A stretch of 64,000 nt of DNA from Paragordius varius (GCA_964247055.1 OZ176055.1:1736001-1800000), one strand, 5' to 3'; counted from the stretch's first letter, positions 44,001 to 47,000 are shown. Notes: generated from the letters alone by a model not told the origin. Numbers and translations are program-made.

Positions 44001-47000
44001 ATTTTTAACCTGTAATTAAATATTATTGAATCTTATAACCAAGATTTTAAACTCTAAATTTTTCGGATTAAACCATAAATTAACGAAAATATACACATTT
44101 AGACAAATTATTACTTTTATTTAAAGTTCACTTTATCAAAGTTTTATTTTAATTTAACTGAATCTATATACAGTAACTGAAATTATACAGATAAAGCGTA
44201 AAAACATAAATATTATTTTGAAGATAATCCCATACAATCTTAATTTTTCCTGTATAAATTATTCAACTACAATTGTAAAATAAATAATTAATCGTGTCAC
44301 CAATATACAGCTCTTCTAAATACTTACTTTGTTTTGCGATTAATAGTAATGAATTATATTTGAAAAAAAAAATAAGTTTAAAAAGGACAGCAGTCTTTAA
44401 AAACATATATGTTTTTGTATTTCCCTTTTGTCAATTCATACTATATTCAAATTCCCAATTAGCTTTTATGCTTATGACACAATATGTAACCTTTAATTTG
44501 TTTCGTGCTAGTCAATACTTTCTCAAACGTTTCATCATAAATTTCTTCGTTTTGGGCCGTTGGTTCCATCAGAGTCATACATGTATTTTGTTGCGGTAAT
44601 GGCGAAGATGTTTCATTGTTCGTTTGACCATTTTTATCTTCTATAGTGGTGGTGGTGGTGGGATAAAACTGTGTGTTTAAATACCGTTTTCTACCCTCAT
44701 GTATAAAGGGATGTGTTAAGGCTTGATCAGCGCTCATACGGACATCAGGATCAAAAGCTAGGAGCCTAAGTAATAAATGCAGCGCTTCAGGCGTAAGGGG
44801 AATGGCATTGGCAATATATTGTTGGTGTTCTCGATGAGTAGTTGTTTGAGATTCTTGTTCGATTGTTGAATGTGGCCGTGCAAAATTGGGGAACAATGGA
44901 TCCAAGTGTGCCAACTTAGGTGGACTATTGTATAGGAAATGGGCTCTGGCCTCAGGACAAGCATAACGTGTAGCATGAAACGTTGGAGTCCCCAACAAGT
45001 CTGTTATCATTTCAAGCTAAAAAATAAGTAACCAAAACCATGAATTTTAAAGTACATATAAATTTTGAAATTGGTTATTTGTAAAAGTCAATTAAATTTT
45101 TTGCAAATATTTTTGACATAGTTAATTGAAAATGTGTGACTAAAACAGTGATCATTATATTATTTGTTATATCATTTAATTAGCAATTCTAATAAAATAT
45201 AGACATTTACACCATCTATTCAGCAAGTAAAAACTCTAAAATTTTTGGATGTTAATTGTCATATTTTATTTCATCCAGTGTCTGTAAATTGAATCATTTG
45301 GAAATTATTTGATCAAAATGTGCATTTAGGCTAATAGATATCATAATAGAGTATATAGCAATATTTATATTGAATTTATTTTTTCGTAAAAATTCAGTAA
45401 GAAAACTATTACAACAAACATTTTTTGTTAAAATTAAAATAATTATAATTTTTTTATGCAATGAATAATTTAATATACACAGTAATTTAATTAATGACTC
45501 TAAAATAAGAGCATAAAATAACCAAATTACTTACTTGTGTCATGGGGGAATTCGATTCAAAAAGAATTCGTCGCACAAACATTTCAGCTAAAATGCACCC
45601 AACTGACCACATATCAACTCCGGCATGGTATATCGTGGCACCCATAAGCAGCTCAGGGGCGCGGTAATATTGAGTAACTACTTCGGTCGTAAGGTAAATG
45701 TCATTTTCATCAGGATGTGCGGTCGTTAAATATTGGGTAGAATTATATTTGGGGCATGAATGACTGTAACTATTATTATTATTAGTAGTATATGGGAAAG
45801 ATAGTGAAGCTTTATGACCACCCAAGGATGTAGTATAACGGTGAAATCGGGTTGGTAACGTACGAGCCAAACCAAAATCACAAATCTGTTACATTATTTA
45901 ATAGTTGTTTTGGTTAAAATATATCATTTCTCATGTATTAGTAAAAAGCCTATATACATTTATTCCCTAAGTATAAATACAGTATAGGTTAAGGAATCGT
46001 CTGCCCAAAATTTAAAGTGATAAAAATAAATGATCATAAGGACAAAACTTTTATTTACAAAATTATTTCTTTAAAATTTACGATTTGAAAATTCTATATT
46101 TGAATGAAAAAAGCGTCTGTGAATAAAACGTTTTTATAGAATGGTAAAATGTTTCTTATGGGTTAAAAAGTAATTTATATAAGAAAAAGATTATTAGTCA
46201 ATTTAAATCTTTTTTATCTAATCTTTGTTTGTAACTTTTATTCATCTTCTTTAATAATTAATTCAAATTTAACTTATGGTATTAAACTTAATATTATGCT
46301 AAACATGTTGTGAGTATTTAGGTAAAAATAAATTACTTTAAGGAGGCAATTTGCATTGACCAATAAATTTCCGGGTTTGATATCGCGATGCATTATATGG
46401 GCTGAATGCAAATATTTGAGACCTAAGTTAAATAAAAGACAAAATTTAGATTACAAAATTATAAAAAAAAGTATTTGTTAAAATCAATATATTTTACCTC
46501 TGAGAATTTGATACATAAACAGTTTGATGTGATTGATGGTGAGTATTTGGTTGGAACTCATAATTTTATGGAGATCAGTATCCATCAATTCCATCAAAAT
46601 GCATCTAATACAACAAAATTTTAATTTGGCATAAAATGCCCCAAAATAAAATTTATAAAGCGATATTATCAGTATAGGCCCTGTTATTTAATATCCAGAA
46701 TACTTTTAAATTGTGGGTTGTTAAACACTTTTAGGCAATAAATTTACACCACAAATATGATGCGATGCCCCTTTTGTATAAAAAAGTGGCCAACACGCCC
46801 TAATTATAAACATAATTTAAAATAATATTCTCACAATTAAAAAATTGATACTTATTAAACAAATTTTCTAAATAAGTTCTATATAATTTGCAACAAACTA
46901 GAAAGAATTGTTATACTGTGGTTGAATTTTACATTCTTACGTTTCAAATCTAATAAAATGTATTTGATGGCCCATATATATTTCAAATGCGGCCCGCGAA

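Follow-up and report, generated by a model that had tools for sequence, protein, structure and literature searches.

Does the Nemo-like kinase (NLK) of the hairworm Paragordius varius truly carry 57 residues, where about ten are usual, between the DFGLAR and T-x-E motifs of its activation segment, or do the additional codons represent an overlooked intron, a gene copy that has fallen silent or an error in the assembly? The question arises from a 64-kb stretch of P. varius DNA, the whole of which is referred to below as the window; all positions are counted from its first letter, and the gene lies on its minus strand. An earlier note on this DNA had described the additional codons as an insertion in the activation loop of the kinase, and its individual claims are considered below together with the results that bear upon them.

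Structure of the P. varius NLK gene

The exons of this gene were located by tblastn searches with NLK from Gordionus (P0004), the closest relative found, and their borders were then refined to GT..AG introns. The joined exons served for counting stops and codon frequencies, and single exons were used in all database searches and in the fold. The results of these analyses indicate that the minus strand from about position 49868 to 41808 contains an intact NLK gene of eight exons, which when read in order give 520 codons with no stops, and all of the exon borders conform to GT..AG. The seven introns range in length from 75 to 2555 nt and their GC content is 0.13–0.27, versus 0.32–0.41 for the exons. 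Exon 1 (49693–49868, minus strand as for all of the exons; identified with Gordionus NLK residues 1–57) contains the start methionine and the glycine-rich loop GSGAFGTV, and it is followed by the donor ATG|gtaacc. Exon 2 (47763–47892), which is 73% identical to Gordionus NLK residues 58–101, supplies the VALK lysine and the alpha-C glutamate, while exon 3 (47280–47335; identified with residues 101–119) ends in FQD with the donor CAT|gtaaga. The region from the hinge to alpha-E is encoded by exon 4 (46498–46604), the catalytic loop HRDIKPGN by exon 5 (46337–46422), and the entire activation segment, extending from ICDFGLAR to MTQ, by exon 6 (45535–45885). Exon 7 (44491–45016; donor AAG|gttaca) covers alpha-G to the C-terminal region, and its MAPK-insert region contains another insertion specific to this lineage. 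Exon 8 (41808–41935) encodes the counterpart of the PLCINP tail.

Exon 6 is bordered by the acceptor ...aacag|ATT and the donor CAA|gtaagt and consists of 117 codons, compared with about 71 in related genes. As its borders are the same as those of the corresponding 71-codon exon in another animal, which is represented by a read-through fragment (P0024), the 46 extra codons are internal to a conserved exon.

Two features of the other introns were also observed. The intron between exons 4 and 5 (46423–46497, minus strand) is only 75 nt long, with a GC content of 0.13, and this genome therefore uses short introns beside those of 0.4–2.5 kb. Additionally, several donors depart from the consensus, viz. 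AAG|GTTACA after exon 7 (44485–44491, minus strand) and GTAAC after exons 1 and 2 (49687–49693, minus strand, in the case of exon 1). Such off-consensus but real donors have a bearing on how cryptic splice sites in this genome should be judged.

Upstream of the NLK start, at 51285–51860 on the minus strand, there are several short stop-free stretches in differing frames. A likeness to decayed transposase pieces had suggested that these fragments, at about 51.3–51.9 kb, could be the remains of a transposase, but this was not borne out by a Pfam search, which gave no significant family, the only match being to DUF3270 and below threshold.

Identity of the kinase and features shared by the hairworm NLKs

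Judged by its sequence, the P. varius gene is an NLK orthologue, and the identity assigned to it in the earlier note is borne out by its best matches, which are proteins named NLK. In a HMMER search with exon 6 against 1.84 billion representative sequences, the best full-length relative was the 459 aa protein from Gordionus sp. m RMFG-2023 (Nematomorpha; a horsehair worm), which showed 74% identity over the matched part. This protein is described as NLK2-like in RefSeq (CAK9303787.1, XP_065322733.1), and its own named matches are mostly NLK, Nemo or LIT-1. Comparison by tblastn revealed that the P. varius and Gordionus NLKs have a common start (MSI.SENF), a common tail (KxPPLLINQ) and the same exon order.

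The kinase domain (Pfam PF00069) was detected on exons 5, 6, and 7, and it was found on both sides of the insert. The VALK, HRD, and DFG motifs are intact, as had been claimed, and GxGxxG, the alpha-C glutamate and APE have been retained as well. In place of the T-x-Y motif of MAPKs the protein contains T-x-E, followed by the conserved NLK stretch, an arrangement by which NLKs are recognized; the middle residue of this motif was Q in 193, H in 24, L in 22, R in seven and T in two of the surveyed NLKs. A further hallmark of NLKs is that they phosphorylate TCF/LEF and modulate Wnt signalling. Many animals, humans among them, share an identical sequence over the conserved half of exon 6. Overall, the P. 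varius protein resembles the NLK/Nemo/LIT-1 proteins in being a CMGC/MAPK-like kinase with the VALK, HRD, DFG, APE, and T-x-E motifs, and it shares with Gordionus, in particular, the start, the tail, the TTE and the loss of a cysteine cluster. It differs from these proteins in the length of the stretch between DFGLAR and T-x-E and, unlike the NLKs from outside the hairworms, it lacks CMCxCC.

The cysteine cluster is of importance in view of what is known of the activation of the mouse protein. In the mouse, activation of NLK proceeds by intermolecular autophosphorylation, within a dimer, of Thr-286 (in TQE), and Cys-425 is required for its dimerisation, for the autophosphorylation of Thr-286 and for activity (PMC3020921). 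Six NLKs, whose sources are vertebrates, a tick and a nematode, have the first cysteine of the sequence H-(T/S)-CMCxCC (Cys-425 of the mouse) 139 residues after the position corresponding to Thr-286. At the corresponding site in P. varius (44657–44692, minus strand), which reads R-L-R-Y-H-T-CMCxCC in other NLKs, none of the four cysteines is present, and all four are likewise missing from residues 389–400 of Gordionus NLK, where the sequence is RRRFEGLKVGGK. The CMCxCC cluster, a feature of NLKs, is thus found in neither hairworm protein, and both of them also have PLLINQ in place of PLCINP. As the cluster is missing from both, the activation of NLK may, quite apart from the insert, already have been rewired in hairworms.

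The loss of the cysteines could also be read as a sign that the gene described here is silent or in decay (a pseudogene or a redundant paralogue), and that the canonical NLK is encoded at another place in the genome. However, all eight exons are intact, with every one of the 520 codons open and canonical borders throughout, none of the catalytic motifs has been lost, and the start, exon order and tail are as in the Gordionus gene; furthermore, the only NLK cluster found in Gordionus exhibits the same loss of cysteines and the same TTE. Hence, we regard a silent copy as very unlikely.

Length of the activation loop and position of the insert

The activation segment of a kinase normally has the form DFG-X19-25-APE (PMC12817480), whereas in P. 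varius NLK about 70 residues extend from DFG to APE. The 57 stop-free codons reported to follow DFGLAR at 45861–45691 are present on the minus strand and lie within the single exon 6, between DFGLAR and TTE. The normal length of this spacer was surveyed in 265 fetched NLK/CMGC proteins, ranging from cnidarian-grade fragments to vertebrates. In 240 of these, exactly 10 residues separate DFGxxR from T-x-E, and the longest loops of the NLK type contain 15 (Gordionus) and 16 residues; in PDB chain alignments of CDK2, DFGLAR and T-x-EVVT are nine residues apart. The expectation of a spacer of about ten residues, as stated in the earlier note, is therefore well founded. A ten-residue spacer is a typical rather than a formally defining feature of NLKs, and the P. 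varius protein, with 57, departs from it.

The size of the insertion depends upon the reference that is used: the figure of about 47 residues given earlier is correct in relation to the canonical ten, but in relation to the nearest relative, Gordionus, only 42 are additional, and these correspond to an alignment gap of 42 codons at 45846–45721 (minus strand). In Gordionus the loop reads SLPDQDETSKRNLYM-TTE, with 15 residues in each of the four isoforms given by two independent annotations. The beginning of the loop, (S/T)LP, and its end, (N/D)(L/I)Y(M/L)-TTE, are common to the two hairworm proteins, and the 42 extra residues are thus located in the middle of the loop with both of its anchors kept. 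The terminal part, PDENDIYL followed by TTE (45682–45714, minus strand), which had been noted to resemble a normal loop, indeed aligns with the lip of Gordionus NLK (...NLYM-TTE) and with the TQE or THE of other NLKs, and the first threonine of its TTE aligns with Thr-286 of mouse NLK; it is referred to below as the native lip. The change of TQE to TTE, which had been listed along with the insert, is present. However, TTE is also found in Gordionus, whose NLK lacks the insert, and it is therefore a hairworm trait that is not linked to the insertion.

These sequence comparisons confirm the unusual loop as a real feature of the DNA that is confined to this lineage, the insert being absent from Gordionus, the sole other hairworm NLK compared. 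In its length, the P. varius loop lies far outside the range of its relatives.

Coding character of the insert

The composition of the insert supports the view that it is coding sequence and not intron-like. Its GC content is 0.357, as against 0.13–0.27 in the seven introns of this gene. Its codon usage was scored by log-odds derived from about 460 codons elsewhere in this NLK gene versus the introns of the gene. By this measure the insert scored 0.37 bits per codon (0.43 for its first 30 codons and 0.31 for the last 27), where windows from exons gave 0.52 ± 0.18 and windows from introns −0.59 ± 0.32 bits per codon, and only 0–0.02% of about 5,900 intron windows reached the scores of the insert. 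As the training set is small and derived from the same gene, this result is supportive but not decisive. The open frame in itself constitutes modest evidence, since it may be expected by chance at a frequency of 3–5%: when the insert was shuffled by dinucleotides, its frame was preserved as open in 4.7% of the shuffles, and across the 64 kb an open frame of 171 nt was observed in 3% of all windows. A second frame of the insert is also nearly open.

These observations bear upon the alternative that a short in-frame intron, removed constitutively or alternatively, accounts for part of the insert. According to the earlier note, only one in-frame GT-AG excision (45863–45810) could be found; this proved incorrect, as there are many others, including those from 45859 to 45770 and from 45859 to 45764, both of which retain DFGLAR and the threonine after it. 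These two candidates occupy 45770–45859 (90 nt) or, with the second acceptor, 45764–45859 (96 nt) on the minus strand; they share the donor AC|gttacc, followed by a TACTAAT-like branch site 10–16 nt upstream of the first AG and by the acceptor aataatag, and their removal would shorten the loop to 27 or 25 residues. Real introns of this gene use similar AT-rich acceptors (e.g., aatgtaacag before exon 6), and one of them is only 75 nt long and another begins with a GTTACA donor. However, the donor AC|GTTACC lacks the G on the exon side, the A or G at +3 and the G at +5, which makes it weaker than each of the seven real donors, six of which begin with GTAA. No more than 5% of intron windows of 90 nt had a GC content as high as that of the putative intron (0.356), and none reached its codon score of 0.43 bits per codon. 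Based upon these considerations, an intron at this position appears unlikely, and even after its removal the loop would still exceed the canonical length by 15–17 residues.

An origin of the insert in faulty assembly or sequencing, as a collapsed or chimeric stretch within the exon, could be suggested by the short (AAT)4 microsatellite that it contains. However, the insert is in frame, stop-free and similar to exons in codon usage, it is unique in the window, conserved codons flank it seamlessly, and the window contains no Ns. Hence, there is hardly any likelihood of an artefact. We consider it probable that the locus contains a genuine, translated and lineage-specific insertion in a working NLK, by which the activation segment has been enlarged.

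Composition, predicted structure and relatives of the insert

The earlier description of the insert as rich in Thr, Ser, and Tyr, with a run of four asparagines, is accurate: S, T, and Y together account for 22 of the 57 residues, and the remainder include six N, four H, four P, four K or R and three D or E. A reading of these 57 residues revealed no Ser/Thr-Pro site and no recognisable docking motif, and an RVxF motif of the form [RK]-x(0,1)-[VI]-x-[FW], which was sought by eye, is absent from them, none of the four K or R positions marking the beginning of one. When exon 6 was folded with AlphaFold2 using an alignment of 26 rows, the insert had pLDDT values of 39–47 and no secondary structure, whereas the conserved helices scored 83–86; these values refer to the isolated exon rather than to the whole kinase, and no homologue row in the alignment covers the insert. 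Thus, the insert is predicted to be disordered and of low complexity.

Of the 1.84 billion representatives covered by the HMMER search described above, none aligned to residues 8–41 of exon 6, the best-matching stretches all starting at residue 42 or later. Similarly, a word search with this exon among 5.8 billion proteins recovered only ordinary NLK fragments matching its conserved half, and no hairworm fragments were found in the word searches carried out with exons 6 and 7 (in the case of exon 6, against the 5.8 billion proteins). A second copy of the insert was also sought in the 64-kb window, where only (AAT)n matches were observed, and the possibility that the insert was derived from a transposon was rejected on this basis.

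A repeated lip motif within the loop

The loop contains four copies of the pattern Pro-x(0-6)-Tyr-x(0-1)-Thr-Thr, the last of which is the native lip, and all four prolines of the loop are used by these copies. The first copy (PTRFHRYTT; P-x5-Y-T-T; 45829–45855, minus strand) has the same spacing of Pro and Tyr as the native lip. The second, PYTT (45784–45795, minus strand), is followed by the N4 run, and the third, P...QYLTT(A) (45721–45753, minus strand), contains the sequence ACGACCG, which recurs in the native copy 36 nt away and in frame, a likeness that is not above chance. When the 48 upstream residues were shuffled, at least three Pro...Tyr-Thr-Thr copies were obtained in 1.5e-5 of the shuffles, and three copies of the simpler pattern Y-x?-T-T in 4.5e-4 of them; these figures overstate the case for the motif, because the pattern was selected after looking at the sequence.

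As the last copy of the motif is the native lip, the insert has the appearance of degenerate repeats of the lip, the additional residues being made up in large part of the other three copies, and it could have originated when the DNA coding for the lip was reiterated by local duplication or slippage and subsequently diverged. Tandem duplication within the insert was searched for at the DNA level; TRF reported none, a repeat search detected only an 11-mer, and a diagonal scan gave values that did not exceed those of shuffled sequences. The DNA thus gave no sign of self-similarity above chance, and a tandem duplication of recent date was rejected. Because of this, and because the TRF result was empty, the case for an origin by duplication depends upon a protein motif that was recognized post hoc.

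Other low-complexity insertions in hairworm NLKs

The second insertion in the P. varius protein is also of low complexity and lengthens the MAPK-insert region, which lies between alpha-G and alpha-H, by about 27 residues (44790–44900, minus strand, exon 7). At the same place Gordionus NLK contains about 50 extra residues of unrelated sequence. The presence of differing low-complexity insertions in both of the hairworm NLKs favours the view that expansions of loops are generally tolerated in this lineage. Farther downstream in exon 7, a T5 run and a stretch of about 25 residues rich in N, T, and Q were also observed.

Possible consequences for the kinase and their significance

The additional 42–47 residues sit between the end of beta-9 (DFGLAR-TLP) and the native lip that has been kept. 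If the insert is translated, we envisage that they would form a flexible tether, rich in Ser, Thr, and Tyr, which loops out from the surface close to the catalytic cleft, that the first threonine of TTE would remain the activating phospho-acceptor, and that the kinase would stay catalytically competent.

Two known systems provide the nearest mechanistic precedents for such a loop, and P. varius NLK belongs to neither family. The first is NDR1, whose atypically long activation segment blocks the binding of substrates and keeps helix alpha-C in a non-productive position (PMC6087429). The NDR1/LATS kinases likewise have extra residues after DFG and ahead of the activating phospho-acceptor, but they resemble the P. 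varius protein only in where these residues are placed. NDR1 is an AGC kinase with a segment that is conserved in its family and seen in a crystal structure, whereas P. varius NLK is a CMGC kinase with an insert that is limited to one lineage and predicted to be disordered. This insert is also not basic (four K or R among 57 residues). The second precedent is provided by the D-group MAP kinases of plants (TDY), in which an insert in the activation loop containing RVxF docks PP1 (PMC12817480). In these kinases, which like NLK are of the MAPK family, the insert similarly lies within DFG...APE, just N-terminal to T-x-Y/E. However, it is short, conserved and RVxF-bearing, whereas that of P. varius is far longer and lacks RVxF.

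With regard to function, a translated insert would somewhat more probably than otherwise be a tolerated spacer having, at most, a mild effect on the kinetics of activation. A regulatory role is less likely, and would be exerted either through extra or decoy phospho-acceptors or through a steric autoinhibition of the cleft that is relieved by phosphorylation, as in NDR1. The novel regulatory or autoinhibitory loop proposed in the earlier note is pure inference. A more specific proposal, which we consider improbable, is that the dimer route dependent upon Cys-425 has been lost in hairworms and that the three decoy copies of the lip (P...Y-x-T-T) serve as a cis pseudo-substrate, as a multisite threshold, or as a long arm for the exchange of activation segments.

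Few parts of NLK vary as little in length as the spacer preceding the activating threonine. Should the insert be no more than a tolerated expansion of low complexity, it would mainly represent one more hairworm protein with a large insertion in a conserved domain, while if the decoy copies of the lip do act as proposed, they would constitute a new way of gating a kinase that modulates Wnt/TCF signalling. A natural NLK that has a 57-residue spacer and lacks the cysteine cluster provides a ready-made test of which steps in the activation of this kinase are dispensable.
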